64,000 nt of DNA. Origin: Paramoeba atlantica (lineage: Eukaryota; Protista; Discosea). Each line of letters begins with the position of its first letter. The stretch's first letter is position 1. The DNA lies in the NCBI GenBank assembly GCA_977017575.1, contig CDRNVI010000067.1, positions 141,662 to 205,661 of the forward strand, given 5' to 3'. Below the pieces are notes generated by a model. The model did no database searches and was not told where the DNA came from. It worked only from the letters and a program-made list of their open reading frames with translations. Position numbers and translations under genes: made by a program. This document shows, piece after piece, positions 6,256 to 39,817 of the stretch.

Positions 6256-6564
6256 AGAAAAAGGGGAGGGCGTCTAAAAAATAAGAAGTCATAATTTTTT
6301 TTAGTATAAAGGTTGTAAAAAAAATCGGTAGTGTTTCCTCATGAAAAAGAAAACGCGGACTTTGGTAAACGAAAAGCTCTTGCGCGAAATGAAATGTACG
6401 CGACAATCGGGAGGTATACTTGTGTAGCTACTGTATCATGTGGTACGTACAAAGGTGAAGCCTATTCTTTTAGTATTGATAGTTGGCTTTTTTTGCAAGA
6501 CTTAGATAGCCACATACAGAGACACCTTTTGTTTATTCCGATTTCTTTTTGCCACCTGACAAAA

Positions 6565-7862: not shown

Positions 7863-8118
7863 CTATGCCCCCCTGCTTATAAGTTCCCCCTACTCAGGTA
7901 CGCTTATGAGTTCCTTTTTCTGGTGAATGCTTTTGTACCCACATTTTGCGAAGCCTTTTTTTACATGTGACAAAATGTCATAAATTTCTACTCTACGTCA
8001 GCCTGCTCTACAGGTTCGTTCACTGAGCGGATATTTGTTTTGGATCCAGTTATCATCTGGTATGCTTAAGAGTTCCTTTTTCTCAAAACCGGGGAACTCA
8101 TAAGCAGGGGGGGTATAG
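7863..8118. mobile_element. Duplicate of the 2412..2667 MITE
   Basis: Same TIRs and TA flanks. Confidence 0.85.
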
Positions 8119-8321
8119 TATTTTGTTTTATTATTTTTACCCTTGCTTTCGTAAGCAGACCGATTTTTTTTTCATCACGCTTTTTTTCAGAATACTTTTT
8201 TTTATTTTTCTTAAAAGAAATTGCGCAAAAAAAAGCGGCAGATAACTAGGTACAGTAGTTCCCTTGACCGAGCAATTTATTCAACACCTCTTCCAATTTC
8301 TTTACAGCGTTTCAAAGTTCA

Positions 8322-8945
8322 ATGACTTACTCCTTTTTAATGATATGTCCGCTACGTGCATCGGATGTACACTCTTCAACGCATCCCCGGGCAGCGAAAA
8401 TAAGGTCTGTTTCCGTACCGCAAGAATACAATTTGGCAAGACTTGTTGAAAGCGCAGATAAAAAGCATCGTACCTGGGACACCAACACACCTGTCTGTGA
8501 GTGGTATGGCATTGAATGTTGTGAGAAGAAACGAGTTAAAGCAATAAGCTGGCGTTTTGCAGATTTAGGATCGTTAAATTGGAAATATTTGCCGCCAAAT
8601 TTAGAGTCTCTAGAGGTGATGAAAGCCCATCTTCGTGGTGAACTTCCACTAGAGATGTTTCCCCCATCTCTCGTATACATTTATCTGTATTACAATAAGT
8701 TAACAGGTAATCTCGTCCTTTTGCGACTTCCACCTTCATTGGAGGTTTTTGACGTTCAAAGCAATCAGTTTTTTGGCATCGTAGATTTTTCGTTACTTCC
8801 AACAGGTTTGTCCGAGCTGACGCTGTCTTGGAACAGTGACCTCAAAGGTGCGTTCGATGTGGGAATGTGCAGTCCGAGTTTGAGCTACGACGTTCGGCGT
8901 ACAAACATCACGGTATCGAATGGATGTTTATTTCGAGAGGTCTAG
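8322..8945 (+). CDS. Short LRR protein (duplicate of 2871..3494, one N->S change)
   Basis: ORF track; nearly identical sequence. Confidence 0.85.
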   Translation: MTYSFLMICPLRASDVHSSTHPRAAKIRSVSVPQEYNLARLVESADKKHRTWDTNTPVCEWYGIECCEKKRVKAISWRFADLGSLNWKYLPPNLESLEVMKAHLRGELPLEMFPPSLVYIYLYYNKLTGNLVLLRLPPSLEVFDVQSNQFFGIVDFSLLPTGLSELTLSWNSDLKGAFDVGMCSPSLSYDVRRTNITVSNGCLFREV

Positions 8946-15670: not shown

Positions 15671-15806
15671 CGTACAATGTAGCGTAGCATTAAACAATGT
15701 TGGTACATTCGTCTCTTGGAATATGGAAATCTTTACATAAACTTCTTTACCCCATCTTTCTTCATATCTTTTCATTCTAAATCTTTTTTCCGCTTACATT
15801 TCATTC

Positions 15807-16688
15807 ATGCTATCGCCCACCCCGGCAACCCGTCATCCGCTTCCCTCCGAGCTCTCCCCACTCGATTCCCTATCCCTTTTCATCTCCCACATTACCAATC
15901 CGCACCCTACGTGGGTCGCGACTCCTTCCTCGGATCCCCCGCAACAAATTCCCCCCCTCTGGCACGGCGTTCATTTCGACAAAAACCAAAAGATTCAAAA
16001 ACTCACCTGGGACGCGTTATCTCTCCAAGGCAACCTTACCTGGGGCCACCTCCCCCGCTCCGTCACCGACGTCTTTATCTGGAACAACCACCTCACCGGG
16101 TCGTTGCACCTACCCGAGTCCCACCCCCATCTCTGCGATGTCCGTATCAGTGACAACGCCCTGGACGGTACCATCGGTCTCGATGCCCTCCCCCTCTCGC
16201 TGGCCTGGCTGAACGGCAGCTCCAATGGCCTCACCGGGGAGGCCTCGTTATGTTTTCTCCCCCCCTCCCTTTGTTATTTAAATCTCACCCATAATCACTT
16301 ATCCGGACATCTTTATTTAAATCTTTTACCCTTAGGAATGGAACATTTGTATTTATCCTTTAACGCCCTCGGGGCCACACTCGATCTCACCGCGCTCCCC
16401 GAGAGCCTGCGGTGTCTGCATTTGGACCACAACGCGTTCTGGGGCCCCATTGTGATTGGCGCCCTGCCGCGGTCCAAGGTGGTGGTGTTCCAGCTGCAGC
16501 ACAACCACCTCTGGGGACCGGTGGTGTTGTTGAACCCGGGAGGTTCAAAACAACAACAACAACAAGGAAACCGAAACAGTAAAGGGGGGTTTCCGACAAA
16601 TTTCAATTTAAAAGTAAATCCCCAGCGGTATGGTCGGATTGCGACGGCCCCGGTGGAACGGGATTCGGGATGGTGTGTGGTGGGGTAG
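15807..16688 (+). CDS. LRR protein ending in CaaX-like box CVVG (293 aa)
   Basis: About 7 LRRs; conserved YLNLLP and NPQ motifs; ends ...WCVVG*. Confidence 0.9.
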   Translation: MLSPTPATRHPLPSELSPLDSLSLFISHITNPHPTWVATPSSDPPQQIPPLWHGVHFDKNQKIQKLTWDALSLQGNLTWGHLPRSVTDVFIWNNHLTGSLHLPESHPHLCDVRISDNALDGTIGLDALPLSLAWLNGSSNGLTGEASLCFLPPSLCYLNLTHNHLSGHLYLNLLPLGMEHLYLSFNALGATLDLTALPESLRCLHLDHNAFWGPIVIGALPRSKVVVFQLQHNHLWGPVVLLNPGGSKQQQQQGNRNSKGGFPTNFNLKVNPQRYGRIATAPVERDSGWCVVG

Positions 16689-17120
16689 AGGGGAGGGAAA
16701 GGGGTGAAGGGGTAAAATTCTCCAGCTCCAGGTAGTGTGGGTCGTTAGTCCACAGGTACACTATATACAGTAAGTCTCCGTACGGGAACATACATCCATA
16801 CCTAGGACTACCAATAGGAGAGTAGGGAGGGGAAGATCCTCAGAGGAATGGGGAAGTTGTGACGCAAATGTATTTGTTTCGATTGTAGACCTCCTTTGTT
16901 CGTTTCCTCATGACTCGTTTGATACGTTTGAGGGACATATTTTCAATGAAAATAATTTGAATGAAATGAGAGTATTCCGGCTAAATGGTTCGTTTAAAAA
17001 TTAAAATCTAATAGTTCATGAAAAAAAGAATTCATATTCCCGGGCACAGGAAGGTGGTAATTACCACCCATTATGCATTATTATGCATATGGTAATTACC
17101 ACATCACCATATCCAGTGTA

Positions 17121-17557
17121 CCGGTGAAGCTTTAATTAATAATAACATTAATTGACGTAATTTCTGACGAGAAAAAAATGTTTACGTTAATTAATGCTAC
17201 GTTAATTAAAGTTACATTAATTTATGTTTTTGTGGCGCGATAGTAAAAGATTTAGCTCTACAAAAAAAATTGAAGTTTACTATTTTTAAGCCCACACAAT
17301 TGAACGAAGTTTGCGCACTTCTCCAAAATTCCACCTAAAGCGAAATACTCCACCCCCTATGGCTGTAGTTTCCAAGGGCAACGGGTCGTGTTCTTGAGGC
17401 ATCTGCTAGAAATTAAAAACATGAAATTATTAGTTATTTTTCGCCATTTTTTGACCAAAATAAATTATTGCGTAATTATTGCGTAATTATTGTGTAATTA
17501 ATGCTACGTTAATAAGAAAACGTACATTTTTTAGTACGTTAAAAAGTGTGTCACCGG
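17121..17557. mobile_element. AT-rich MITE
   Basis: TA|CCGGTGA ... TCACCGG|TA with TTAATGCTACGTTAAT and AATTATTGCGT subterminal repeats. The perfect TIR is short. Confidence 0.6.
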
Positions 17558-17713
17558 TAAGTTAATTTTGCTCAAACATTATTTAATAAAATTCAAAAAT
17601 GAAGACAATTCCTTCGCTATCGTTTTCTGTTACTTTATCAGATACTCCCGTCTCGCCCGTAAGCGCACAGCAGAAAAATATTAGCTGTAACTCACCAGAC
17701 GAATCAGCTAAGA

Positions 17714-18427
17714 GTGTACCTAACGCGGTGTCTACTCGCGCTGCAAACGTACGGGGAGTTGCTCCCCCAGGAATGTGAATTATCACGATTTATTCAGAAT
17801 ACGGCAGGCGGCCATCATCTCTGGACGACCGCCACCCCGGCCTGTAAATGGAGAGATGTCCTTTGCGATAAAAAATCAAACGTGATTGGATTGGACTGGT
17901 TTGGGTACGACCTGCACGGCCCACTCCAATGGAATTGGCTGCCCCACACCGTGCAGCGTTGCAATGTCGAAAATTGTTTGCTTTCAGGGTCTGTCGAACT
18001 GAACGAGTTGCCTACTCAAGTCGTAGAAGTGAATGTCGCGTGTAATAAATTTACAGGGGCAATAGATTTGACACGCTTACCGAATACACTTCAGAGTCTA
18101 AAACTGAACAGCAACTTGTTTGAGGGTAGTGTAGACTTGTCTCATTTGCCACAGTTTTTGAAAACTTTGAATCTTTCTCGTAATAAGCTTTCGGGAACGC
18201 TGGACTTACGCGGATTGCCTCGAAGGATAGAAACGGTAAATCTATCGAGTAACCAGTTCACAGGATCTCTTGACTTTGGGAATTTACCTTCATATTTATG
18301 CCATTTATGCTCACTGTGCCTGAAAGAGAACAAAGACCTTTGTGTTGAGGTCAACATGTTGAAGATGTCCAAGATTTTCCCAAATCTAGCAGTCGACGTG
18401 GGATATACAAGGATAAAAGGCACGTAG
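17714..18427 (+). CDS. LRR protein (237 aa) starting at GTG; ATG may have been lost
   Basis: LPQECEL leader, ACKWRDVLC cap, about 6 LRRs. There is no in-frame ATG upstream of the cap. Confidence 0.7.
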   Translation: MYLTRCLLALQTYGELLPQECELSRFIQNTAGGHHLWTTATPACKWRDVLCDKKSNVIGLDWFGYDLHGPLQWNWLPHTVQRCNVENCLLSGSVELNELPTQVVEVNVACNKFTGAIDLTRLPNTLQSLKLNSNLFEGSVDLSHLPQFLKTLNLSRNKLSGTLDLRGLPRRIETVNLSSNQFTGSLDFGNLPSYLCHLCSLCLKENKDLCVEVNMLKMSKIFPNLAVDVGYTRIKGT

Positions 18428-18832
18428 CCTTGACTTGTGCGACATATCGGCATATCTAATTTGGCTAAAGCATGTTTTGCACGTTATACACTTGATGGAC
18501 TGTGGGTGTGATTTCGCGTGATCTCGTTTTGGAACCCACCTACAGTCCTCATTGTAGCATGTCCTCATTGTATACTTGTGGACCCTCTTGGTACTCCCAG
18601 GAGATGTCCAACAACTTGTAAATTTTATTCGGGTAACTAGAAAGAATATCCATTAACCAAAAAAAAAAACATAAACACACTGGGTCAACCGGTGAAAATG
18701 CATCCTAAAAATCGACCTTTCTAAAGTCGTTTCGAACCCGAAACGAATGTCATTTTTCTGTCATTTCTCTTCCTTTTCGGATTCCGTTTTCACTATTCTC
18801 ACCCCACCCCCACACCCTACTACCCCATTCCC

Positions 18833-19927
18833 ATGCTCCCCTCTCCACCCTACACCGCCACCTCCCCTTCACGCCCCTCACCCTCTTCACCCCCAGCCCT
18901 CCCCTTCGAGTACCAACTTGCTCTCTTTGTCCAACACCTCCACAATCCACACCCCTCCTGGGGCATAATACCCCACACGCCAAAATCTTCCACCCTCTCA
19001 CAAGGAGCGCAAAACAAAACCAAGAAGTCGTTAACCAACACTTCCACGACTTCTTCATCTTTTACTTCTGATTTATCACCCCTGTCTTCTTCTTCCTCAG
19101 AAGTAGGTGAAGAGAAAAACAGGACATCATCTTCCTTTTCAGAAGTAGGTGAACAGAAAAAGCCGAAATCCTCCTTCTCTTTTTCGCCCTCTTCCGCACT
19201 GGAAGATACCAAGAGGAATGCATCCCCCTCTTCTTTATTCCCCTCTTACCCCTCCCCCCTCCCCCTGTGGCAGGGCGTCACCCTGGACGGGACCGGGGCC
19301 CCGATGGACCTCCACTGGGGGGATGCCGCGCTCCGGGGCAACCTCTCCTGGCCCCACCTCCCCCGCAGCGTCTGCACCGTGAAGGCGTGGAACAACGCGC
19401 TCACCGGGGGGGTGGGGGACATCCCCCCCGCCCACCCCGTGCTCCAGGTCGTGGACCTGCGGCAGAACGCGCTCACCGGGGGGGTGGGGCTGCGGGAGCT
19501 CCCGGGGTCGCTGAAACGACTCGCGCTGCGACGGAACCGGTTGGTCGGGGCGTGCGACCTGGAGTTCCTCCCGCTCGCGATGCGGTTGTTGGATCTCGGG
19601 GAGAATGGGCTGGAGGGGGGGATTTATTTACATCTGCTTCCCCCGACAATGAAGTTTTTGTATTTGGATAATAATGGGTTGGGGGCGACGTTGCATTTGA
19701 CGGGATTGCCGCCCTCGTTGAAGTATTTGTATTTGAACCATAACCGGTTTATGGGACGACCGGATTTGTCACGGTTGCCTACAAATTTGGAACTTCATTT
19801 GGAGCATAATTACTTGTCTGGAGTGGTTTTCACAACAACTCTTCATCCAGGGGTGCTGATCAACCCGCAGAAAGGAGGGGAAGTGGTGTTGCCTGAAAAG
19901 AAGACCAGGAGCTGTGTGGTATCCTAA
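18833..19927 (+). CDS. LRR protein ending in CaaX box CVVS (364 aa) with a Ser-rich insertion in the cap
   Basis: LRRs, YLHLLP and INPQ motifs; ends ...RSCVVS*. The insert includes a duplicated SSSSEVGEE/QK block. Confidence 0.9.
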   Translation: MLPSPPYTATSPSRPSPSSPPALPFEYQLALFVQHLHNPHPSWGIIPHTPKSSTLSQGAQNKTKKSLTNTSTTSSSFTSDLSPLSSSSSEVGEEKNRTSSSFSEVGEQKKPKSSFSFSPSSALEDTKRNASPSSLFPSYPSPLPLWQGVTLDGTGAPMDLHWGDAALRGNLSWPHLPRSVCTVKAWNNALTGGVGDIPPAHPVLQVVDLRQNALTGGVGLRELPGSLKRLALRRNRLVGACDLEFLPLAMRLLDLGENGLEGGIYLHLLPPTMKFLYLDNNGLGATLHLTGLPPSLKYLYLNHNRFMGRPDLSRLPTNLELHLEHNYLSGVVFTTTLHPGVLINPQKGGEVVLPEKKTRSCVVS

Positions 19928-20449
19928 AAAGTGGCTCACTGATTATTTTTATGTTTAGCCTATTGGGGATGATGTTTTTTAGTCGGGCGCTCAATTCTGA
20001 AGAAAAAGAACCCGGTTTTGCAAATGCTGCGTTGGACTTTCCTAAGCAAACGATCTTTAGTGTTTCGTTCTGCTTGAAATTTCCACCATGTAAGCACTCA
20101 CATAGTAGTACGATCTACAAACATGGACGTATACCACATGCAACACTGCTCAGCTCAGACACATTCTATTTAAGTCTTTCAGTCTTAGTGAGAATTGACG
20201 TCAAGGATCTTGCACGCCTTGTGTAGGTATTACACGGCGTATGTCTTGTATCCGAAGAGTCTTCACAGGCTCGGCGATTAGTCTGTTTTTGTACATAAAA
20301 ATGATAAACAAACATATCAGTGATGACATGTAACACGATTTTTCAGGCACAAAAATGATCCAATCTTCAATGTCAGAGTTCTGCCATTTTATTGAGTAAC
20401 ACATTTCTTTTATTCCGTTCCCAACGGGCACATGCTTATGTGACTCAAA

Positions 20450-21298
20450 ATGAAACAAAATATTAACAAGCTGCAGTACTTTAAATCCAGCTATAGTGGC
20501 GCTTCTCAGACAGTTACCGATTCCCCCGAACACAAGCTACTTTGCTTTATACAAAACGTACATAATCCGGACACTACTTGGACTCATCTCACATTTCCTC
20601 AACGAGAAGAGACATCGAAAAGACTCTCTCGATGGAAAGGAGTGGCATGTGATGAGGAAGGAGAGGTCGTGCTTATTGCATGGGGAAACATCTCCCTTTC
20701 GGGAAACCTCTCCTGGACGTACTTCCCAAGCTCGGTTCGTTATTTATACCTTAGAGACAACAGATTGGGTGGATTAATTGAATTCCCCGCACAATCTTTG
20801 TATTTAGAAATTGCAGAGCTTCAAAACAATCAGTTTGCTCAATCGCTTGCGTTGAATGAATTATCTGATTCCTTGACTCGATTGGATGTCAGTGTAAATC
20901 GTCTCGATGGTGAGTGCACGTTGCACTACTTGCCCTCCAGCCTTGAAAGTCTCAACCTTTCTCATAACTTGTTTACAGGAGGCGTATACCTCAATTTACT
21001 TCCGATTCCTTTAGGAGAACTTTTTCTCTCGTACAATGCATTAGGTTGTTCGTTAGATTTACTCCATCTGCCTCCCTTCCTGGAGCGACTTCATCTCAAT
21101 GACAATTCTTTTATTGGCAAACCAAATGTCTCGGAATTGCCTACGACGCTGACCGAATTGCGAATGGAACGTAATTTTCTGTGGGGTCCGATTTTTATCT
21201 CCGACTTGAGACTGAACTTTACGATTAACCCGCAAGCAGGGGTATGCACACACGTAGAGCTTCGACGCACGGAGAGGAAATCTTGTAAGGTATCATAA
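20450..21298 (+). CDS. LRR protein ending in CKVS (282 aa)
   Basis: Same subfamily motifs (GGVYLNLLP, INPQ); Cys at position -4. Confidence 0.9.
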   Translation: MKQNINKLQYFKSSYSGASQTVTDSPEHKLLCFIQNVHNPDTTWTHLTFPQREETSKRLSRWKGVACDEEGEVVLIAWGNISLSGNLSWTYFPSSVRYLYLRDNRLGGLIEFPAQSLYLEIAELQNNQFAQSLALNELSDSLTRLDVSVNRLDGECTLHYLPSSLESLNLSHNLFTGGVYLNLLPIPLGELFLSYNALGCSLDLLHLPPFLERLHLNDNSFIGKPNVSELPTTLTELRMERNFLWGPIFISDLRLNFTINPQAGVCTHVELRRTERKSCKVS

Positions 21299-22443
21299 GA
21301 ATAGCGTGATAAGGATCACTCCATGACAGTATCACAAAAATAGCGATTCAATGCAGAAACTGTTTTCTGGTCAGCGCTCCCCTCCTTTGGTACAGTTTCT
21401 TTTAACTGGCATGACTTATGACCATAGTTCTCTGGTCTTTTCTTGGAATAGCTCAAGCAAAAGCACCTAAACGAAACAAGAAAAATCAGCTAAACAAACG
21501 AATAATTCTCACCAATTTTCTAATTCTCACCGCATATCAATTGTGCAGCATCCATTACATTAAGTCACTACCATGTTATTGAGGTCCACCACAAGCAAAC
21601 CGAATTCCAACGGCGTTCCAAGAGGCCGAGCGAAGATTGAAGAAACAGAAAGCGCGACAAGATTTCTGCATTGAAACGTCAACCTTTATTTCTTTCCTTA
21701 ATCTAATCGCCCAAGAGAGAATACATATGTTTCCGTAAATTTATTGTGAATATTTGTCTTAATTTTTGACCCAAAATGAGCGGAACGGGGTTGTAGAGGG
21801 GTGACTCCTATCCAGACGCTTCTGGGCGCTTCTAACATCTATGGAGTTCGGACTTGGTAATTTGGGGTTAAGCAACCTAAACACCCGTATGGGGGACATT
21901 TTCTAAAAGCTTGTCCCTGGAGGTGGTAGATTGTCCCGCGGCTATCATTTTAGTAGGGTATATCTAGCAAGTTCGGCACACATTCATGTGGAGTGTAACA
22001 CAGGGTACACATGTGTGTGGAGTGTAAAAAGTGTATACAAGTAGTACAAGTGTAAGTCTTATTCTGCTATTTCATCTATTTTCTTTGAATACACGTGCCT
22101 CCTGTGATTGTGCAGTAGACTAATACTTTTTTTTTCTTTTTGCTCTTCTGTCGATGTGCCTCTCTCTGGTGTGTCATTTTGGATTTAATTTCGCCCTTCG
22201 TCAATTTTTCATAGGTTTCTGCTTTCTTTTTCCCCTTTTTAGAACATTTCCCGATTTTTGTAACACCTTTTACTTTAATATCTCTTTAACCTCTTCTCGA
22301 TACTCCTTGATACTCCTCGTTACTCGCCCTGTCATCCGCAAAGGCGCATGTGTCGCTCGCGACATCTACCCCTTTACTAATGGAGATTCAGATGATAAAA
22401 TTTCAACTGAATCGACGTAGAGGCTTCGTTTGCCAACTTCTCA

Positions 22444-22821
22444 TCACACACATTCTGCATTCCAAAGTACCGTCAAAGTACTTATTAACAATAATAATAA
22501 CAAGTAAGTCCTTTTTTCATCATCGGTGAATATGAATGGCCTACCTCGTTTATGAGGCGTGGTTAGATTTTTTAGTTCATAGCAGTGCTGTAGGATGACC
22601 TTTTTCTCATGGGTTGAGTTCCATAGGCGAATGCTACCAGTCACTGTGCGACCATTCGTAAGACGTTGAAATTCTTCAATTTCTTCAGCATTCCACGTTT
22701 TTCTAGTCTTTTTTTCCGTGCCGTTCCTATCGGACTCGTGGGCCTCCACAATCTCAATGACATGTCGGGGGCCACAAAAAGAAGACTCCATGAGGGTTGG
22801 CTGGGCGGGTGCCATTGCCAA
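22444..22821 (-). pseudogene. Possible transposase N-terminal DNA-binding relic
   Basis: KTRKTWNAEEIEE and KRGRPFIFTDDEK resemble pogo/Fot1 HTH-linker motifs; no catalytic part is visible. Confidence 0.25.
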
Positions 22822-22890
22822 AAATTATTGAGGAGATTTCGGCGAAAATCTGGAAAAAAAATAATTATTCCGTTAATTGTTATTCCGTTA

Positions 22891-25219
22891 CTGTCCCCCC
22901 CTACTTATAGTGCCGTTTTGAAAAAAAAATTGTCCGAAAAAAAATGACCAATTTTTTTGACCAAAAGGTAGAGTAAATATTGTGGAAATTTCTAATATAT
23001 TCGAGGGGCTGCGGGTGTGCATCACCGAACCCGCACCGAACCCGCACCGAACCCGCGCTTTGCATTTGAGGTCGAACGAGGTCTATTTTAGACCCAAAAA
23101 ATGGATTGTACACAAACAAAGTAGCTTAAAGTGAAGTTTTTTTAGTTTGCTACCGTACATAGCCGCCTTACTGTGAAAATACGGTGTACGCTGTATACGG
23201 TGCTGTATACGAACGGTGTATGCATTACACAAATCAAATGTACAATTAATATACCCTCCACAATACATGCATAATTCTTTTACATTATCCTCCTTTTTAT
23301 ATGATGAGCCCTGTTGAGAGCAACGCAGATTTCACTTCACGTATGAAGGTAACATCTGCGAGGGATGATGACGTATACGACGTCATTGTCGCATCGCTTA
23401 TGCGCACCTTCACGAAGCGCAAAACTCCTTTCGCCCCCCCAGCGCTCGTTATCACTGAGGAGGAGTTGGGAGCCAAGGTGGAAGAATGCATAAGGCGCGT
23501 ATCGCGCACGATGGACAGCTACTTACATGCCACACGTGGATTGCAACCACTGTTTTGTTCCATTCAAGGCACCACGCAAAGGTTGCCTTGATGAACACCA
23601 GGATCGGTTCAACCGCATGAATTCTTGGATTCGTTCAAGAATCGAGCGTTGTTTCGCTCATTTCGATAAATTTCGTTTTTGTCATGGAACGGATCACGAT
23701 ATTACGTGGGTAAAGGATGCCGTTCAGATTGTATCTGTTGCAGTGTATGGTTTGCTTGCATCAGAACCCCAGTACGACTTTGACAGTGAAATAAATGTAC
23801 ACTTACAAAATATCGATGACTCATCTTTTTGTTGGTGTAGCAAAGGGTGTGGTTTAGTCAAACCGATTGATGAACGGAGGGATTGGCTCAAAGAACACAT
23901 ATACGATGTGGGATATGTTCCCAAGAAACCACAGCATGGATCAAAAACTAAATAAAATTAAGTATCTAGTCGTTTTCCATGAATTGCGAAATGTAAACTA
24001 CGTAGTCATATCGTATACATGGCTTATAAATTTTTGTTATTATCGTATATTATGTACACTATGTATGTCGCACATTATGATTTCTCCTTCGATCTAACTA
24101 TTTTTCTCCTTCAATGTCTGCAGCTCCGACTAATTTCGCATGCTTTCAGAGGATTTTTTTTCAACCCGCGCCGAACCCGCACCGAACCCGCGACCCGCAG
24201 CCCCTCAGGTATGTAGTTTAAAAAAGGAGAATACCTAGTAAATGTTTTTTAGCTAGTAAAGTTCTACCTAGTAAAAGGTTTTTTTGATGGACGACTTCTA
24301 AAGCAAATTTAGGCAAATTCAGGAAAATTTAGAAAGGTTTCAGCCCTCTAAACCTCCTTCTGGGAGTGGGTAAAAAGGTTTCCAAACACTCAAGTCAACA
24401 AATGGCAAAGAAAACTTGAGTCGTCAAAAAACATTTGAAGATCTACATGGCACCCGCACACTGATAACGCATAAAACTCGCACACTAATATTGCATAATG
24501 CACACTGATAATGCATATAAGCACACTGATAATGCATATAGGCACACTGATAATGCATAAAACTCACTGTCCCCCTTCCACCGCCAGTCCTCGTAACTTT
24601 CTGGCGAATAACAACTTTTTCCTCTGTCTCACGTTTAGACGCGGATGAGGCTTTCACTGCACGCTGACTTTTTGCGTTTCGTTTTGCAAACTGCTGAGCA
24701 GTGGTTTGCGAATTTAAGGACTTTCTTCTCTTTACGTCAGGTTCGCCTACTTTCTTTCTAGGCGTAGACAATGCGAGAGAGAGAGAGAGAGCGCCAGAGA
24801 AGCTTTAACAAAGAGCGGGAGGCAATTTTAAGGAAAATGCACCTTAAATTGCTCCAAGAAATTAATGGTAAGCACGCAGTGACGAAGGTATTTGTCTTTT
24901 CCGTTACGGAAACATACGGAAAACAGCTTGTCATTTCGAAATTTGTTCATGAATTAATGTTTCACAAATTTTTCTATTAGGGTATCTTTATTTCACAATT
25001 TTTTACAACCACTATACCCTATACACAGCAGTGGAGTAGAAACTCCATTTACAGCGCTTAGGCACACAAAACCACATGATAGAAAGAATTGCGCCGCGAG
25101 GCGGCACGCTTTTTTTTTAAGGTGGAAAAAGTTTCACCCTCGACTTGAAACATACTACCCCCCTCCCCCCCACTTATAGTTTGGTCAAAAACCGCGGCAC
25201 TATAAGTAGGGGGGCACAG
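22891..25219. mobile_element. Non-autonomous Tc1/mariner-type element carrying nested insertions
   Basis: TA|CTGTCCCCCCCTACTTATAGTGCCG ... CGGCACTATAAGTAGGGGGGCACAG|TA. Confidence 0.8.
23003..24206 (+). mobile_element. Internally deleted PIF/Harbinger-ISL2EU (IS5-like) transposon
   Basis: 14-bp TIR GAGGGGCTGCGGGT/ACCCGCAGCCCCTC with CCGAACCCGCA subterminal repeats. ORF 23527..23955 contains VPFKAP..LDEHQDRFNRMNSWIRSRIERCFAHF (DDE_Tnp_4 C-terminal motif). Solo ends lie at 2031 and 7482. Confidence 0.75.
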
Positions 25220-25789
25220 TAATTTTTATTCCAATGATTTTTATTCCGTTAATAAGTACTTTGACGGTAAGCCAAATGCAGATTTAACAAAATCAATTTT
25301 GTGTTGATTATAAAGTAAAATTTTGCGTTGATCAATGGAAGCTAAAAACTTTTCTACACGGTTTCTGACACGTCGAAACTCCCTATCAAAATCTTCATCA
25401 ATATCACTACCCTTTTCTTGACAAAAACAGTGCCGAACGCTGATGAAGGATTTGTCAGCCCTCATCATTTCATCCCGTTGTTCAAAAATTGGAATTTCAA
25501 GGCATATCACTATTCAAGGCACCCACTATCATGAATGCTCCCGTAAAAAGGTCCATTCCACGCCAATGGACAGCCGTCCATCATTATCAGCACCTGAAAT
25601 GTCCAGCATTTCCCTCTAGTTTTATGGTTGTATAATTCTTTGGGCCCTCTACTATGCATAGGAACCCCATCTAGAATACTAAAACACATAATGAAGTTCG
25701 GTTCGAGGATCTAGAAACGCCGCTCTGCGTTCGCGGATACTGAAAAAATGTAAAATCATATGCCAAAAATTAAAAAATGATGCAACAAA

Positions 25790-26420
25790 TGTCTTTTTCA
25801 AATAACGATTTGCAAGCGCTTGGAGACACTCTTTATAGTCTTCTCGTGAGTACTTTTGAGATCAGTTTGAAGCGCCTCGTATGCACTCTCGATACAAGAG
25901 CGGAGATCACCGCGATTACGAGGTCGCAAGCGATCCTTGCGCTGATCCATGATATTCCATAAGTTTTCGATGGGGTTGAGATCCGGTGACTTTGCAGGCC
26001 AGGGGAACGTTCGCACGTTTTGCTGCTGAAAAGTACGCCTTGCCGAGTTGTGCGCAGGGCAATTGTCCACATCAACAACTGCAGGGTGCCTGTGCAGGTA
26101 GTTCAAAAGACCATTGGAATTGGTTCTTTGGTCATGGCAGCTTCAAAAACGGCTCCGGTCACAGTCGCTCTATTTCCCTGCTCATCTCTAGTAGGAAAAA
26201 TGTGGAGATGAAATCCATGCTTTATGCTTCCAGCCCACCCACGTATGCTTACCCTCTTCGTCATCTGATTCTTCCTTCCCCTCTTCCGTAAAAGAAGAAA
26301 ACAGTTCTCGACGACGTACCCATGCCATAGCCTTATTTGGGAATCCATAAGAGCGTCTTTCGTGATTCCAACCCTTTCTCAGGCTTTGACTGTAGCCCTC
26401 TTTTGGTTTATCGTATCCAT
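25790..26420 (-). pseudogene. Tc1/IS630-type transposase relic
   Basis: DNCPAH...WPAKSPDLNPIENLW (D-E spacing 32) and upstream SIRGWAGSI..G; one frameshift near 26105. Confidence 0.9.
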
Positions 26421-26479
26421 AAACTTGTACGTGCTTACGATACTCTCTAACCCCTGCTCCTTTGATATTTACACACCCA

Positions 26480-27340
26480 AACCCTTTGCACCACCAATAT
26501 TTTCTGCGCAAGATCTTTTCTGATGACAGTAATGGAGAAGGCGCATTGTGCGCTCGCGCAGAAAGTGGGTCTTTAGACGATTGAATACCCCGACGTCGCA
26601 CGGTTGGAGGACACTGGTACATTTCGCTGGAATAAATTATATTCGTAGCCAAGAAAATCTCTCTGCGTGCTTACACTCTGACCAAAATTCATTCCGGGTA
26701 AGAGCAGAAACGTGTACTCTACAGCAAACGAGGAGCAAAATTAAAGATTCGTCACCAGTAAGTTGCAGACTGTTATGCATTGTCTCGTAATACGAATGAA
26801 GAATTTTGTTAATATACTCCTTCAAGGTATCCGTGCAAATTTAGTGGCTCTTAGTTTGGTATTGTACAACTTCGGGACAAGAACGGGCATGTGCTCGCGT
26901 AGATGCTTCGAGTCCGTTCCATACTACAAAGGGATGTAAAAGACCACCGGAGAGACATGCTGCAGCCACCAAAGTACAACTCCGCTTGTCACCCTTTGAA
27001 AAGTTGCTCGCCGCAGTTCCACGAAGAGGAACCCCGCGCTCCAAAAGCCCATTGTAACAAAGTCCCGTCTCATCCATGTTGATAGTTCGCCAATCACAGT
27101 ACCATTCCATTCGGAATGCACTAGATAGCAAACGCGAAGCATTATGTCGCGTCCGCGATCCGTGAAGTTGCTTGGCAAAAGTGACTCAGGTGTAGACTTG
27201 AAGGATTTAAAACTGACAAGGGCATTTAGCCATCGGACAAATATGTGATATGACGGAATGAAAATTTCGTCATCTTTTTGCAGTGCCTTTTCTTTCACTC
27301 TACCGTCTTGAGCGTCCATCGTGCGTTGGGTAAACTCCAT
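26480..27340 (-). pseudogene. pogo/DDE_1 transposase relic
   Basis: One frame reads NMDETG..K.SCTLVAAAC.SG.LLHPFVVWNG..KSH*..LLLV(C)..H..*FIPAKCTSVLQPCDVGVF. A CENP-B-like EKA..F.PS..RW segment lies upstream in another frame. Confidence 0.88.
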
Positions 27341-27974
27341 CGCCAGTATTCCGGAAATTCGCTCTCAATTACTCCATGAAGGTGTGTCCGATTGGCGCCA
27401 CAAAAAAAGAGGAGACCATTTTCGTGGTGCTTTGCAATCAGCACCAAAGGTTCACCCAGAATGATGTAGTCCAAAGGGACTTCACATCATGCCCGGGTAG
27501 GACCAGTGGCTATTATTTTCCAATTGCGACTTCTGTTTTTCCATCCATTCTACACAGAGCATAATCACTGCCACTTCCAAACGATCAATACTTGCTTTTC
27601 GAAGAAGGGCAGTGAACTGCTTTAGCGGCACCTTCAAGGTAGGCGCTGCAGAAGGGGTAGCCCCGGCTACCCCTTCTGCAGTTTTTTCCTGCGAGTAGCA
27701 GGTCTTCCTTTCTTTAATATTGTAGAAACTGTAGAGGTGCTTAGGTTGACAGCAATAAAAAAAGGAACTAATGGAAACCCCGCTATCGTAAACAGAATGC
27801 TTTTGTACAAACCATGTAAACAAAACGCTATGTATACAAAATACTAACCTTGTTTTTGGTGGCCAGCTGGCCACTCTTGCACAACATGACCAGCTGTAAC
27901 TACACTCTGCAACTGCAACACCAGTACAGTCATTGTCTCACATGGTCTCTCATGTGGGGGTCTCATTAGGAATT

Positions 27975-28085
27975 CAAAATTACAACACGCCATTATCCCG
28001 TCGTAGTAAATCCGCCTTTGCTTGCCTGGCATGGTGATCGCCGGAAAAAATCCGCGATTCTTTTCGCTGTCCAAGCGGTTACCCA
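27975..28085. repeat. Dispersed repeat D
   Basis: CCATTATC..GTAGTAAA..CGCCTT.GCTTGCCTGGCA is shared with 45810..45935 and, inverted, with 47950..48115. Confidence 0.6.
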
Positions 28086-30338
28086 TTCTTTTTAGTGTTG
28101 TAACGTCGCGTAAAAGTGTTGCAAGTGAAAATTGTGTTTTGGAAGATTTTTCTGAATTGAAAAAGAAACTTATTATTCCCTTGCACGATTTTGGTACACT
28201 TCCTCCGAAACATTGGATTTAGGTACACTTCTTCCGAAATATCCGATTTCCCTCTTTATAACCCTTTACTTCCAAAACTCCAGAAACGATCCGAAGTACG
28301 TACATAAGCCGCAATTGTATCATATTCTACAGTAGTGTACAAGGCCTAAGTCGTATAAGGGGGGGGTAACAGTATAACGTTTATGACATAGCTAAATGCC
28401 AATCTTAATGATGAATTGGACAAACTAAGAAGACGAGTCTTATGTGTTACACATATGACGTATCATTGAGTCCATCGGCTACCAATGGCTGATTTCAAAG
28501 AAACAACGTGTAATTTTTTGTTCCCCTTAGAACGGTAACCTTTGTAATTGTTTAATCACTTGTGCGCGCTGCCGAACAATTTACAGTGCTCGCAAAAATT
28601 AGTAAAACTTTTATCGTAAAATAAGAAAAAAGTTTTATATTTTTAAATACTATAAATAGCAATTACATAATAAAATAGAATTTAATTTCAAGTAATTATC
28701 TCCCTCTTTCTCCGATTGCTCTACATGATGATTCTTATGGAAGTCAAGAAACATGAGTTTCTAATGACTTCAATACACTATGCACCACGCTGATTCTTTT
28801 TGTTTTACGAATTAATGCTATACGAATAATTGTGTGCACTGTACTTTTTTTTTGTATTATTATTGTACAGTATCTTTTTTTTCGTACATTATTATAGTAC
28901 AGTAGGTAAATAATTGTTTACATATTTGACACGTTTTTGTTGCTTGTTTCCATGTGGACAGATGCCGTACGCATTGAAGTACTGTAGTATATCAGAGTAG
29001 TGTACGAATAAGTACGTATAGTAACTTATTGCGGCGGTTCTATACCGTCCGAATGCACGAGCGGTGTCTTGCGAAGACGCAACTCACACTTGAGCATTTC
29101 TGCAAGACCGCTAAATGTGCTTTATTTGGCAAAGAATTTGGCTGATGTGCGCTCGTGAAGGGATCCCCCGGTGCCAACGGGGAGCACTATTGAATTGGCT
29201 TTTGTCCTGCAAACGGAATTCTTCCAGAGCTAGGAATATCAAGTCTGGCAGCTCACTTGCCAACGGTGAAGGGATTCTTTTACCTGAATAGCGTAGCATG
29301 TGTGCCCCTTTCGCCCACCGCGATGGAGAACGGGGAACATACATAGCGGGGAACATGTACATATCGGCAGCATAGCGAAGAATGTGCAAGTGGATGCGGT
29401 GTTTTCTTTTACAGCGGTGTAAAGCACGTCTGTAAAGATTGCGTCCCAATGTTGGCGGCATCGATAGATGATTATGCACATGATTATACACATGATTATG
29501 GCCACTGGCGTCGCCATCCAACGCGGCAACGCTCAGATGCTGAGAGCGGCCTCGGGGGAGCAGGACTGTGGGCGGCGTGGGTAAAGGGGACTTTGTGGTG
29601 CCTTTCTTTTCTTAATTCTAAAGTTAATTGCATAACTCCACCTGTAATGAGGAACGATAAAATGTTTTTTGTAAGTTTAAGAACTTTTTTCTACTTGTAG
29701 GGGAGAAATTTCATTGAAAAACTATTATAGAGAAGGCTTTTGCAAGTGTTCGTGGGAATAATGCAAACAATAGCGAGCGATGCCAAACAGTTTGGCGTTT
29801 CCCCAGAATTTCCCGGTGTTGAATCCTACGACTCTATTGCTGTGGGTGTGGGCGTGTTAGTATTGGCGGTGCATGAGCTGAGGCGGAAGAATTTCTTGGT
29901 TAAGTCGTAGTTTTTTGCCGCGAGATGAGAAAAGGAACCTTCCTTGGTCCGTCCAATATTCCTCGGAAATGGTTCACGTTGCCCCCTCTCTGCTCCTCGT
30001 ATCCTCTATCACTAAACGTGGATCCTCCAGAAGTCGCGGGGGTTAAAGTGAAGCAAATATAGCCTTTTTCGTACTTTTGACGTTTCCTTCATTTATATGG
30101 CGCAAATACAGTATACAGAATATTTGTCCTATGAAATATGCAGAATATTATCTTACTTAGAGGGGTGACTCTGGGTGGGAGCGCCTAGGATATCTTTCGT
30201 CAAAATTTTCTTCCTTAGTTTCTTAATATTTTTTACTTCAATCCGAAGATACAGAAATCATGTTACTGGAATTGTTATTCTGCAGGGCTTAAGCAAGCGT
30301 TTCAGCATGTAATACACGTTAATAATACATTGTGCTTA

Positions 30339-31122
30339 GAGGGGTGAGTCTGGGTGGGAGCGCCTAGGATCCCGCCTAGGATTTTTTCCAACTTCTTTTT
30401 CGTGAAAAATCCGAACTTGGCGGACCCATCCTGCGCATACCAGGGGGGGGGGTCACCCCCACGTGGGGTTGGAAAATTTGTTCACTTTTTTTTAATAATC
30501 GAGGGTACAGCGGTAGTTAAACAACCACCGCAATGCACCTAACGTTAAGACCGTCCAACCGGTGGGCTTTTTTTGGTCGAATGAGCAGAGCGTTGTAGTA
30601 TCGGACTGCGTCAGGGACTCTGCTAGCTCACCCGCTAAAACTTCACTATCCCAGATTGTTGGTCCTGAACGGTCCTGGCTGGAGAAACGAAGTTTTTACG
30701 CCTCCATTCCTCCGGAGATGGAGTGGGATTCGACCACAGCTTGCACGAGTGCAGTTCCACTTCCACCGAGGTTACAAGGTTGACACGCGAGAAAAGGTGG
30801 TGCTGACAACGTATTCCCGACAATGGACTTGCCACGCCGTCTTACAACCCCGGGACGCGGTTAACGACTCCGCGAATAGGGGTTAAACAGGAATAGAAAT
30901 GGACAAATCCCTGCATCTAGCTGGAAGTCTTACTTCGGGAGGCTAGAAGTCTTACTTCGACGCCGGTCTCCCTTTCTAACTCTTTGTCATGCTAGCCCAG
31001 CATGTTCCATCCAAGGGACATTGAGGATTCCGGACCTCTTTGCGAAAATCATTTCACCAAGTCGGATCTCCGTAGAAGTTTACTGGGAGCGCCTGGGAGC
31101 GCCCGGGCAGGAGTCGCCCCTC
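30339..31122. mobile_element. GAGGGG-ended non-autonomous element
   Basis: TTA|GAGGGGTGAGTC..GGGAGCGCCTAGG ... GGGAGCGCCCGGGCAGGAGTCGCCCCTC|TTG. Additional solo ends at 21796, 30160 and 32407. Confidence 0.7.
30380..30531 (-). repeat. Internally deleted copy of element C
   Basis: Reverse complement matches 55740..55830 and then jumps to 55468..55520. Confidence 0.7.
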
Positions 31123-31299
31123 TTGACATAACCAACTTAATGTTGAATACAGATACAATGAGTACGTAAATTGTCTAATATACGCAGCATCGTTTCGCCC
31201 CCGTTCTTCTTCAAGCTGCCGTTATATTTTTCCGCGATTGCTTGCACGCGGCCGGCTCTTCGACTCGACTTTCTAGTAGAAGCGTTCGAATCGGGGAGG

Positions 31300-31720
31300 A
31301 AGTGTGTTAGGTAGAAAGTTTCTACCAAACATCCCCGATTCGAACGCTTCTTTGTCGTTTAGTTCGCGCATTCGACGGTGTTTGTATGCACTCCCTCCGA
31401 TGTAACCCATTGACGCCGGTGATTGACACTTTCCCATTTAAACTTTCGCCCGAGCTGATTGTTGTGTCTCGCCCCGTCTGTTCAAATTCTTGTACGGTTG
31501 CTGGAGGAGAGCTCCTCAATCCTTGGGACTAAAGTATTCGCCGTGCGGTCAGGAATGATTTCCATGAAGACTTCGGGGAGCATGTTAGTTCTCGTGGTGG
31601 ATGCAATTGTCTGTGCGATTTCTGTCCCTTCACTGCGAACACGCCTCGCACCATGTTGTCCACGATGGCGCTTCCGAACCGGAAAAAGGTTTCATCGCAT
31701 TGCATAAAAGAGAGACGAAC
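31300..31720 (-). pseudogene. Merlin (IS1595/ISXO2-like) transposase relic
   Basis: QCDETFF [frameshift] RKRHRG..EIIPDRTANTLVPRI..RI*TDG..SVNH..WVTSEGVHTNTVE: all three catalytic motifs are visible, with two in-frame stops. Confidence 0.88.
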
Positions 31721-32019
31721 GGTGCAAAACACGCCGACGTACATGAGCAGTTGTCGTAATTGAATCAACCCACTGACGTAGAGATATCACTGGCGTAGAG
31801 ATAAAACCAGCGGGTGTCTATGCTGCTTTATTTGCTTTTCGTGTGCATCTGAATTCTCATACAAAGAGACACGCCTTAAAAAAAACGAGCGCCCAATGTT
31901 ACGATAGAGCCAATCTCTTTACAAGCGTTGCGTTGCTGGTGACAGTACTCGAGAGTCGCTTACGTTTTTCCATAAACCATTCTAAGCTTTGGTTTTTAGA
32001 TTTCCAATGGAGAGTATGC

Positions 32020-32865
32020 AGTAGGTCTGTGTAAGTTCGTGTTGGTCCGTGACGAGCTGTGTAGGTACGTGTAGGTTCGTGGTAATCCGTGTAGATTCGT
32101 GTAGGTTGGTGTAGGTTTTTTTTTTGACATTTTTTGAGAAGGTTTATTGGCTCGGCCGCTAGGATGATTGCATGTAGGTAAATTAGACCGAATTAAACCA
32201 CTGTCCGGGTTAATATTCCTGGTAGGGATATTAAGAGGGTATAGGAATATAACAAGGTATAGGAATATTAGAAAATTAGCAGAAAAGGACCAAAACATTT
32301 TTCGCGCCGCGAAGAGGCGCGATCTTTGATCTTGTCCTCGTTTGGGTCTTGTGCGTGCTTGGAGCTTGCTATTTTTATTTAAAAAACATACAAAAAAGGG
32401 ATTTTCGAGGGGTGAGTTGTGTGGATCTCCTTAATCGATCACGAGTGCCGTGCGCATCTCGAGGCACACGCGGGAGGAAGGTAAACACAGGGGGCGGTGC
32501 TTCTTCGTCATGAATCACCAATAAATTTACTAACTTAAAGAAAAATGTACTCTGTGAAAAAAGAAAACAACTTTTTTGCAGTTACTTTTTCCGGTTTAGA
32601 TATGATACTCCTCGGATTCGGAACGATTGGGTCGAAAAACAGATTTTTCCAAAATCGGACAAAATACAAGACCTGGAGGGGGGGGGTAAAAGAGGCTGAA
32701 CACTATTATAAGTTGAAAACAACCACCGCGTTTAACGAAGAGCCTAAAAAAGAAAAATATTGAAATGAACTAAAGTAAAACTACTAGAAATCGGAAAAAA
32801 GTGGTTCTGTGTAAGTCTGTGTGAATTCGTGTAGATCCGTGTAGGTTTGTGTAGGTTTTTTTTGA
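32020..32865. repeat. Two direct arrays of ~10-bp CGTGTAGG-like repeats (32020..32125 and 32805..32865)
   Basis: Each degenerate array is followed by a T8-9 run. Probably transposon subterminal repeats. Confidence 0.6.
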
Positions 32866-33109
32866 ACCCCAACCTAGCCCATCTGCAGACTCTCCAATTA
32901 TTTTGGTTCTTAGATTATATTGTTTAAAAGTCACAGTAACTTTTTCGAAGTACATAATGCCGGGCGAAACATGGTGAACGGTGGTGAATGAGAGATATAA
33001 AAATAGTAATGATCAGTGGATAACTTTTTCATGATTAAATCAAAATCAGAAGTAACGAGACCCTTCTCAGAATAAAATTTAATTCAATAGTATCGGAGGA
33101 AAACGGCAT

Positions 33110-33961
33110 ATGGCATTATTCCTTTCCGCCCTTCCGGTTCAGTCACTGGAGGTGTCGAGTAGTTCCTCCAACGTAACACAAACGGACACGCTACTTCACG
33201 AGTTAACCCTTTTAAAAAAATTTATCTCCCAAGTCGCGACGCCCCATCTCTCGTGGAAAACACCCGAGAGCGCGAGTGTGTGTTCCCAATGGGCAGGGGT
33301 CTCGTGTGACGCCTCCGGTTTCGTGACCCGGTTATCCTGGAGCGGGTTAAAACTCACGGGGAACCTTTCCTGGTCGTATTTACCCTCCCGCGTTACAGAA
33401 CTCTACATGTGGAAGAATGCCCTCCGAGGGTCGATTACTCTCCCACCCACCAACACGGTTTTACGAGAAGTAAATCTGAAATTGAATGAATTTACTGGAC
33501 CGCTGGATCTTACAGCGCTTCCGGAATCCTTAGAAGTGTTATCCGTACGACGAAATGCGCTAAGTGGAAATTGTGATTTGCATTTTCTACCCCCAGAAAT
33601 GCGTTCACTGGCGCTTAGTCATAATCAGTTCCAGTCAGGGATTTATTTGAACCTCCTGCCCCCGGTGTTGTCGTTTTTGTATGTAGACAACAACGAGCTC
33701 GGCACCACGGTGTGTTTGACACAGTTACCCGAGAGGTTGACGAATTTACATTTGCAACAGAATTATTTGATCGGCGTGGCTGACTTGCGGCGGCTGCCAC
33801 GCTCACTTACTAGCACACATTTGGAGAATAATTGTTTCCATGCTGTAGAGTATGAAAAGACAGGAGCAAAAAAGAAACTGGACGACGCGATTGTGTTTAA
33901 TCCACAGCGCTCAGGGATTATATTGCATTCTGGCAGAAGCGATAGCTGTACAGTGTGCTAA
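33110..33961 (+). CDS. LRR protein ending in CTVC (283 aa)
   Basis: CSQWAGVSC cap, GIYLNLLP and FNPQ motifs; Cys at position -4. Confidence 0.9.
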   Translation: MALFLSALPVQSLEVSSSSSNVTQTDTLLHELTLLKKFISQVATPHLSWKTPESASVCSQWAGVSCDASGFVTRLSWSGLKLTGNLSWSYLPSRVTELYMWKNALRGSITLPPTNTVLREVNLKLNEFTGPLDLTALPESLEVLSVRRNALSGNCDLHFLPPEMRSLALSHNQFQSGIYLNLLPPVLSFLYVDNNELGTTVCLTQLPERLTNLHLQQNYLIGVADLRRLPRSLTSTHLENNCFHAVEYEKTGAKKKLDDAIVFNPQRSGIILHSGRSDSCTVC

Positions 33962-38158: not shown

Positions 38159-39817
38159 ATGCCGATTTTAAGCGTATTATACGTGGGACCTCATGAGTAT
38201 GTTTCGCCTCCCATATATTCACCCAAACATCAGGCCTTTGATGGCAAAACAATGGCCGACACTCTAAGGAGTTGCCTTCAAATCAATCTCGGCGACCACA
38301 GGGCCGTAAAGCTCACGTACCTTATGGTCGACGGGAGCGCAGTGAACCAAGTTGCGCGACAGCACGCCGAAGGTCATTTAAGAAAATTTTATGATCGTAT
38401 TCATCCGGTACCGGAAAGAGATCTCCAGAATTTTCAAGAGCACTTGCTATTGGGATTTCCAGGAATATCGCTTCTATCATGCATCGGACACATGTTAAAC
38501 AACGTGTGTAAAACGTCTCTCGAGTCGTACGAGGATACTCCGGTATTCGAATTCAAGAAACACTTTGCACGAGCATTTTTCTCTGGGGGTAAAGCAAGTG
38601 CTATGAAGGGCAAATACAAAGGTCAAGTACTGGATACTCTTTTGGGGAAATTTGATGAGAAAGTCGTTATTGCTGAGTCGACTCTCAAACAGTGCTACCG
38701 TGGACTCGGCGAAAATTCTCCAACTCGTTACAAGGAAGCTTTAGAGATTAAAATTTGTGAAAGCTTGACTGCGCTGGAAAAAGTAATCCCGCTCGACTCC
38801 TGCTCACTTCTTTGCCGTTTAAAAGCTTCGAACTTAAGCTGGACAGATAAACATAACATCTTATTGGAGATCCCGATCATTGTTTCCGCTCTCCGTGACG
38901 CAGGGGCACGAAGAGCTGTGTCAACCCCAAAGCTTGGAGGTGTCACGCGGTGGTGTGAAGACAAATTTACGTGTATGTCTTTTTTATACACTGATCTGGA
39001 TTACGTGGCTGCATTCATTTTCAGTGAAATTGCCAAGCGACGTCACGTTAGCGCATCTATTCGTCGATGTCACCAACTCCTCCTGGAGCATGGTGCGGAA
39101 GCCCTGAAGTGCCAAAGCCGAGAATTTCTCGACAAAAGTAATGTACTTCATCTTGCACTCCGAAAATTTTCTGATATGATGCATAAGCCCATGGCGACGC
39201 AAGTTGCGCAAACGTTGGAGTTATATGAGCACGCTTGTTCTGGTGAAGGTCCCGATGGACTTGACATTGCAATGCGGCACCATATGCGCCGTCTCAACAA
39301 AAACCACAACATGGATTTCTGGAAGGACGTTGTGTGGTTTCGTCCTGCGTTCATTCTACAGTATGCGCGGCCGTGTGGACTGCAACCGATTTCTCTCGCT
39401 CGTGCAAACAACTTGTTTGATGAAAATGCTGGTACACCTAAGGCTCTTCGACCATTATTCAATATCTCAGAACAAGAGTGGGAGGAATGGGGATCTTGCG
39501 TTGCCTTTCGCTGGAATCCAGAGATTCACGAAGACGAAGATGTTTGGTGGCTAGAAATAGGCAGCGAGATGTTTCCTGCTATATTTCGAGCTGCTATGCA
39601 CTACATTTGGACGCCACCTCTGGTTACCAAGTGTGACAGTTGGCTTTCGATTCTATCGTACATGTATAATTCTAGGCAAACTCGCACGTCGCCCCAAGTG
39701 GTGGCCAACCGGATATTCATTCGCGGCAACCAGGAGAAGCTTGAATATTTGATACCGGGAGGTGATGAAGAAAGTGATACGGATGAGTCAGTTGACATTA
39801 CAGACAATGAAGGTTGA
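38159..39817 (+). mobile_element. 5'-truncated hAT transposase ORF (552 aa)
   Basis: LMVDGSAVN (2nd Asp), CIGHMLN (CxxH), TRW, and a C-terminal dimerisation domain WW..FP.IFRAA..P..KCDSWLS..R..IFIRGN. The first Asp and the BED finger are absent. Confidence 0.88.

Follow-up and report, generated by a model that had tools for sequence, protein, structure and literature searches.

The question raised by the 64,000-nucleotide stretch analyzed here (assembly GCA_977017575.1, contig CDRNVI010000067.1, positions 141,662 to 205,661, deposited as Paramoeba atlantica; the whole stretch is called the window, and coordinates are window positions unless a contig is named) is why four of its leucine-rich repeat (LRR) genes, referred to by their start positions 15807, 18833, 20450 and 33110, end in a CaaX-like box with cysteine four residues from the stop, and whether that ending serves as a lipid-anchor signal. 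Judged by what six diverged copies have kept, the ending is a real, selected motif, and by phylogeny the four genes are part of a distinct, well-supported clade of old paralogues within the LRR family. The proteins of the clade are probably membrane-tethered; that the cysteine at position -4, Cys(-4), is farnesylated by the organism's own enzyme, with the LRR domain peripherally anchored to a membrane as a binding module, is a reading to which we give about an even chance. CaaX anchoring, LRR modules, their combination and the LRR expansion of Perkinsela are all already known; no report linking LRR proteins of Perkinsela or Prokinetoplastina to CaaX boxes or prenylation was found in the literature searched.

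The window is eukaryotic; its intronless genes are almost all on the + strand, transposon relics are numerous, and a six-frame motif scan identified 16 LRR open reading frames (ORFs), all on the + strand. The original prediction that four of these end in CVVG, CVVS, CKVS and CTVC proved exact in coordinates and endings, with all four intact and on the + strand, and the two features said to be common to them, a Cys exactly at -4 and an NPQ motif before it, are both invariant, at an NPQ-to-Cys spacing of 16, 14, 16 and 13 residues in gene order. A Cys(-4) or NPQ tail occurred in 4 of the 16 window LRR ORFs and the other 12 have neither, so that the statement that no other LRR ends in this way holds within the window (0 of 12 others) but not across the genome, where L004:10001-10894 ends CVQI. 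The linker, described as basic and polar, is basic in 18833 (KKTR) and 20450 (RRTERK) and polar without being basic in 15807 and 33110. In-frame stops were found 2 to 36 codons upstream of each ATG, and therefore longer hidden N-termini are excluded in the four window genes. Three of the four proteins (15807, 18833, 20450) lack a hydrophobic N-terminus, as expected from the claim that none has a clear signal peptide, and 33110 is only weakly signal-like. No hydrophobic C-terminus was present in any of the four; a glycosylphosphatidylinositol or transmembrane anchor was ruled out as unlikely because the tails have no hydrophobic stretch, and a Rab-type CC or CXC motif was ruled out because the endings do not match it. 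Pfam matches in the four proteins were to LRR_1, LRR_4, LRR_6 and LRR_8 and to LRRNT_2, a plant-type N-terminal cap, with some of the LRR_1, LRR_6 and LRRNT_2 matches above curated cut-offs and others below. Protein 18833 additionally carries a Ser/Pro/Thr-rich insert of ~90 residues after the N-cap helix.

Additional members were sought by fetching contigs of the same assembly (ENA ERZ24900291) around other LRR genes and scanning them. One contig, L006 (ctg3851l), which overlaps the window in one repeat only, carries two more genes with NPQ and Cys(-4), both with 12-13 repeats. Loss of Cys(-4) in further family members would have counted against the prediction, and when this was checked both L006 members kept the tail, as NPQ...CILS and NPQ...CCIS. 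No further clade member was found within 14 kb upstream of the L006 pair, and tblastn detected no clade fragments at 21300-33100 of the window. A tree built from 28 LRR proteins placed the six members in one clade with support of 100/99 and the 22 others outside it, which bears out the claim that the four window genes are distinct from other LRRs. Protein searches were less informative: a word-index search with 33110 matched only itself, a search with the four-protein alignment recovered window proteins and distant LRRs only, with no close named NCBI proteins, a scan of JGI metagenomes gave no match, and a profile search of 1.84 billion representatives returned, among its best 150, no NPQ/CaaX member beyond the window's own. 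The two L006 members exist yet are absent from that best 150, and therefore the blank there is not evidence of absence. Automated gene calls in the LRR family are often shortened, which hampers family-wide searches; the public protein for 20450-21298 (P0006, 218 aa) begins at an internal Met and lacks the N-cap, and the public call for L006:7209-8393 covers only its last part (7803-8393, 196 aa) even though the 449-codon ORF is intact.

Branch lengths inside the six-member clade sum to ~5.8 substitutions per site, and the probability that a site evolving at the average rate would be unchanged over the clade is ~0.003. The only invariant tail positions in the six-way alignment are N, P, Q and Cys(-4). 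Position a2 is V, V, V, V, L and I across the six members, thus aliphatic in 6/6, and X is G, S, S, C, S and S, giving a clade pattern of C-x-(V/I/L)-(S/C/G); the linker between NPQ and Cys varies from 13 to 16 residues in the clade, yet the stop always falls three codons after the Cys. That Cys(-4), an aliphatic a2 and the position of the stop were retained over ~5.8 substitutions per site is therefore more than chance. Within the portion of the genome that was sampled, 6/6 clade members have Cys(-4) compared with 1/23 other LRR ORFs (Fisher p = 1.5e-5, with relatedness not taken into account). This sample contains 68 ORFs of >=150 aa, with the overlap of L006 and L009 counted twice, and the other Cys(-4) endings among them were those of one LRR (CVQI) and a spurious poly-Cys ORF. 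The LRR with CVQI is P0132 (L004:10001-10894), a single LRR gene between a glycosyltransferase gene and DOT1; P0112 (L007:10001-10873), whose tail is similar, ends ...LPYEVKVG and lacks the Cys, and the Cys(-4) of P0132 may be a chance case.

Base composition around two of the genes offers a further view of this selection. A patch of ~1.1 kb surrounds each of genes 15807 and 18833 (15700-16900 and 18700-19950), and in it the coding strand is strongly C-rich and then G-rich, with a GC skew of -0.6 to -0.8 followed by +0.25 to +0.3 and a GC content of up to 75% at 19300-19500. These patches explain the Pro/Ser/Thr/His-rich N-termini and the long insert of 18833, rich in Ser, and also why 15807 and 18833 alone have lost the N-cap Cys pair. 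The tail of 15807 reads GGA TGG TGT GTG GTG GGG TAG (GWCVVG), where W at -5 and G at X are plausibly products of a drive toward G; the TGT Cys codon, Val at a2 and the stop were kept inside this G-rich stretch, which therefore points to selection on the Cys. An interpretation of the N-cap Cys loss as a sign of cytosolic life was dropped, since the loss is confined to the two skew-island genes and the other four members keep most of the N-cap pair. Contigs of four runs under the same species label cover 15700-21400 (5,701 letters), and the strains are almost identical; the listed single-nucleotide differences in three of the genes, being the best-supported ones only, number 14, of which 8 are synonymous and 6 nonsynonymous, and none hits a CaaX codon, a pattern that mildly supports purifying selection. 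A run guessed to be RNA contributed one 160-letter contig within gene 15807, too weak a sign to count as expression. Between two LRR genes, at 17037-17560, there is a short intergenic element whose depth in three runs is 5- to 10-fold that of its flanks and which has many variant copies; two joints skip it, and it is a high-copy mobile element (SINE-like).

The DOT1 gene of the same assembly matches short DOT1 chains in the Protein Data Bank (PDB), which we take to be kinetoplastid, far better than yeast DOT1, and its best named relatives are Prokinetoplastina PhM-4 (48%) and PhF-6 (45%), ahead of trypanosomatids (~40%). By these affinities the genome is prokinetoplastid, and it is taken to be that of a relative of Perkinsela, another species because the window proteins have no close match among named NCBI proteins. 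In Perkinsela sp. CCAP 1560/4 the published description (Tanifuji et al. 2017, PMC5601477, Supplementary Note 1.4) counts "462 such proteins" and "hundreds more" leucine-rich genes, whose significance it calls unclear; these genes are small and LRR-only, with many clustered and many expressed (PMC5601477), and retroelements of that genome carry the spliced leader (PMC5601477, Supplementary Notes 1.2-1.4). Compared by this family description, the LRR genes here match a prokinetoplastid, Perkinsela-type expansion, as they are small, LRR-only, arranged in one-strand clusters and furnished with a common N-cap, whose motif LP.EY.L..F...W...C.W.GV.C is common to the window LRRs and other proteins of the same assembly. 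The repeat style LP..L..L.L..N.F.G is the same in both, and Perk.140.1080 ends ...ACRIC, i.e. with Cys(-4) in CRIC. The two differ in that the LRR note of PMC5601477 does not mention CaaX or prenylation and in that the mean intergenic distance reported for Perkinsela is 515 bp, whereas this genome is much less compact. A link of the LRR genes to an endosymbiont is plausible, the genome being prokinetoplastid and having in common with Perkinsela its hallmark LRR expansion.

The fold of the clade was assessed from an AlphaFold2 model of the 33110 protein built on a 50-sequence alignment (mean pLDDT 86.8, pTM 0.83). The model has a cap helix at residues 24-38 and a regular solenoid from ~25 to ~250 with pLDDT >90, followed by a tail (250-283) with pLDDT of 37-56 that is predicted to be flexible; a flexible tail of this kind would fit what a prenyltransferase needs of its substrate. 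Across the clade the architecture consists of an N-terminal cap helix, 9-13 plant-type repeats of ~23 residues, a short capping strand after the invariant NPQ, and a flexible tail of 13-16 residues. Best Foldseek matches of the model were the plant LRR ectodomains PSKR, PGIP and SERK, with E down to 6e-11, a query-normalised TM-score of ~0.65 and sequence identity of 20-27%. Proteins of this class in plants are secreted or form receptor ectodomains, with signal peptides and disulfide caps, and we know of no plant LRR protein of this type that ends in CaaX.

If the ending is read by the organism itself, the LRR protein would be made in the kinetoplastid cytosol, its own protein farnesyltransferase would add a farnesyl group to Cys(-4), the last three residues would be trimmed and the Cys methylated, and the solenoid would then sit at the cytosolic side of a membrane, bound to it peripherally and serving as a binding module. 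Some copies may be aided by a second signal, either a basic run (20450, 18833) or the extra Cys at -5 of L006:7209-8393. Farnesylation, processing, location and binding role are all predictions. Kinetoplastids do farnesylate CaaX proteins (PMC3206815), candidates for the alpha and beta subunits of farnesyltransferase (FNTA, FNTB) are listed in what is presumed to be the Perkinsela sheet of the PMC5601477 supplement, and a fragment of HMG-CoA reductase was called in L007 of this genome.

Several observations weigh against this reading. Farnesyltransferase genes of this genome itself were not located. The T. brucei (Trypanosoma brucei) farnesyltransferase prefers M or Q at X, and S, T, A or C are residues that it "does not readily modify" (PMC3206815); since all six X residues are S, C or G the clade proteins would be poor substrates if the organism's own enzyme behaves as that of T. 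brucei does. The four S residues and the C do fit the set of the conventional, mammalian-type farnesyltransferase named in PMC3206815. There are two possibilities: the farnesyltransferase of early-branching kinetoplastids is a conventional one, or the motif is read by another enzyme, possibly that of the host. A G at X, as in 15807, is unusual for farnesylation under CaaX rules. With its LRRNT_2 cap the LRR domain belongs to the plant ectodomain type, and a domain of extracellular type counts against a purely cytosolic location; the N-cap Cys pair, which forms an extracellular disulfide in plants, is retained in most members (three to four of six). Lastly, 33110 starts MALFLSALPV, with a Kyte-Doolittle value of 2.15 over 10 residues, and L006:7209-8393 also begins with a mildly hydrophobic stretch.

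An alternative explanation could be that the conserved Cys has a role other than prenylation, in a disulfide, S-palmitoylation, metal binding, or a recognition motif of the form C-x-(V/I/L)-x. This is unlikely on balance but deserves a hearing, since plant proteins with this type of domain lie outside the cell and as a rule have caps that contain Cys, since the N-cap Cys pair mostly persists in the clade as already described, and since other window subfamilies have a Cys near the C-terminus as well, e.g. ...VSNGCLFREV; the poor fit of the X residues to the T. brucei enzyme also speaks for it. A disulfide would require a partner Cys, yet the tail has no conserved second Cys, there being none at all in the tails of 15807, 18833 and L006:4132-5241, and neither a disulfide nor a palmitate would need exactly three residues after the Cys with an aliphatic one at -2, nor does a tail predicted to be flexible resemble a folded cap. 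It could also be that the tail is common by descent and its resemblance to CaaX a coincidence without function, and here a single origin is all that has to be explained because the six members are one clade, and the Cys-less tail of P0112 beside that of P0132 suggests that chance cases exist. We regard such an accident as very improbable, since an unconstrained Cys, a2 and stop position should not survive ~5.8 substitutions per site while the tail diverged and the linker varied in length, and since they were kept even in the G-rich stretch of 15807.

The enzyme concerned could instead be the host's if this organism, as Perkinsela does, lives within an amoeba behind a single membrane; the LRR proteins would then be exported into the amoeba cytosol, farnesylated there by the amoeba, and anchored either to membranes of the host or to the symbiont's outer face, as with AnkB and Pel of Legionella. 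Prenylation of injected effectors by the host, amoebae included, is established (PMC2916131, PMC13081727), S or C at X would suit a conventional farnesyltransferase but not the T. brucei one, the LRR domain belongs to an extracellular type, and Perkinsela is bounded by a single membrane in the amoeba cytoplasm. The strongest hint comes from another organism and another clade, in which a secretion signal is paired with a CaaX-like end: in a second euglenozoan assembly (ENA ERZ25072283), three paralogues of a different LRR subfamily end PCQIA, PCQIE and PCRIA, each ending preceded by an acidic Ser/Thr/Glu-rich stalk, and P0007, as well as P0093 once extended to the ATG upstream of L003:3787, has a signal-peptide-like hydrophobic N-terminus, while the third paralogue ends at a contig edge and a fourth (L003:1250-2719) lacks the PC[QR]I[AE] ending. 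We nevertheless consider host reading of the clade's motif quite improbable, as only one of the four window proteins has an N-terminus that is at all signal-like and upstream extension is excluded, no export route is known, the organism is established as prokinetoplastid while its endosymbiosis is assumed, and the specificity of the amoeba enzyme is assumed as well. A broader version, in which this clade and the PC[QR]I[AE] subfamily are both effectors exported by a eukaryotic endosymbiont and lipidated by the host farnesyltransferase, is a long shot; if true, LRR binding modules would be pinned on host membranes or the outer face of the symbiont in a eukaryote-to-eukaryote counterpart of the AnkB/Pel strategy, and the hundreds of unexplained Perkinsela-type LRR genes would gain a first clue to their function.

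The clade may also be set beside other systems with CaaX boxes or LRR domains. FBXL2 is an animal F-box protein with a different class of LRR and is geranylgeranylated, with L at X; the present clade is LRR-only, of plant type with an LRRNT_2 cap, and has S, C or G at X. FBXL2 and FBXL20 are described as LRR solenoids tethered to membranes by a C-terminal CaaX, with neighboring Cys residues palmitoylated after prenylation (PMC9988375), and this palmitoylation may be compared with the CC of L006:7209-8393. BspA-like LRR proteins of Entamoeba histolytica (e.g. CSP, EHI_016490) have no signal peptide or transmembrane segment, and CaaX-type prenylation has been proposed as their anchor but "remains to be demonstrated" (PMC5349171); they differ from the clade in belonging to the TpLRR/BspA class (Pfam LRR_5), in being much larger, and in having proposed sites that are partly internal. 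The AnkB and Pel effectors of Legionella pneumophila use a C-terminal CaaX as an anchor on the membrane facing the host cytosol, in amoebae too (PMC2916131, PMC13081727), and resemble the present case in that the CaaX is carried by a protein, with a repeat domain or otherwise unrelated, that an intracellular organism produces. They come from a bacterium, whose type IV system injects them and whose host prenylates them, whereas here the producer is eukaryotic and probably has its own enzyme; the original prediction had also placed prenylated LRR proteins among Legionella effectors, and this is weakened, as no mention of an LRR was found for them in PMC13081727, which deals with those effectors. 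Plant LRR ectodomains are the nearest in structure, through PSKR, PGIP and SERK and through the LRRNT_2 cap found by Pfam. T. brucei KinesinCaaX (CVIM) is kinetoplastid-specific, farnesylated via its CaaX, and dependent on the box for its localisation (PMC3206815), although its X is M, as preferred by the T. brucei enzyme, and that of the clade is S, C or G.

An old clade that keeps a lipid-anchor signal splits the Perkinsela-type LRR genes into at least two classes by predicted location. If the anchor is real, its members would be membrane-tethered binding modules, either where the symbiont meets the amoeba, a parasite of farmed fish, or in organising the symbiont's own membranes. That the X residues do not match what the T. 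brucei enzyme is known to accept poses a separate question. Coordinates of the features discussed are collected in the table.

Table. Positions of the LRR genes, their CaaX boxes and NPQ motifs, and of related genes on other contigs.
Feature	Position	Strand	Description
NPQ/CaaX-clade LRR gene 1	15807..16688	+	293 aa, end ...DSGWCVVG; Pfam LRR_4; C-rich-then-G-rich skew island
CaaX box CVVG, gene 1	16674..16685	+	TGT GTG GTG GGG, TAG directly after; strongly G-skewed stretch
NPQ/CaaX-clade LRR gene 2	18833..19927	+	364 aa, end ...KTRSCVVS; skew island, GC up to 75%
CaaX box CVVS, gene 2	19913..19924	+	read from sequence
NPQ/CaaX-clade LRR gene 3	20450..21298	+	282 aa, end ...ERKSCKVS; basic stretch RRTERKS before box
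CaaX box CKVS, gene 3	21284..21295	+	read from sequence
NPQ/CaaX-clade LRR gene 4	33110..33961	+	283 aa, end ...RSDSCTVC; LRRNT_2; protein used for AlphaFold2 model
CaaX box CTVC, gene 4	33947..33958	+	read from sequence
NPQ motif, genes 1-4	16617-16625, 19862-19870, 21227-21235, 33899-33907	+	invariant alignment columns
Clade member 5	L006:4132-5241		369 aa, tail ...NPQRPGPLQLGKEKCILS, end CILS
Clade member 6	L006:7209-8393		394 aa, tail ...NPQNEKNITFTGKSSCCIS, end CCIS; extra Cys at -5
PC[QR]I[AE] paralogues	L002:2702-4738, L003:1-744, L003:3787-4980		ERZ25072283

There were other features in the window apart from the LRR genes. An intact ORF of 552 aa on the + strand (38159-39817) has no Pfam match recorded in the public gene call. 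The stretch 25-3494 is a near-identical segmental duplication of 5476-8945, in which the ORF at 880-1395 is identical to that at 6331-6846 and those at 2871-3494 and 8322-8945 differ by one residue, while the ORF at 25-804 repeats the C-terminal part of the 755-aa ORF at 3988-6255. On the - strand, at 25798-26106, is what remains of a DDE transposase of Tc1/mariner type (...PDLNPIENLW...); it falls within the 12 kb of gene-poor DNA that separates the third CaaX gene from the fourth.

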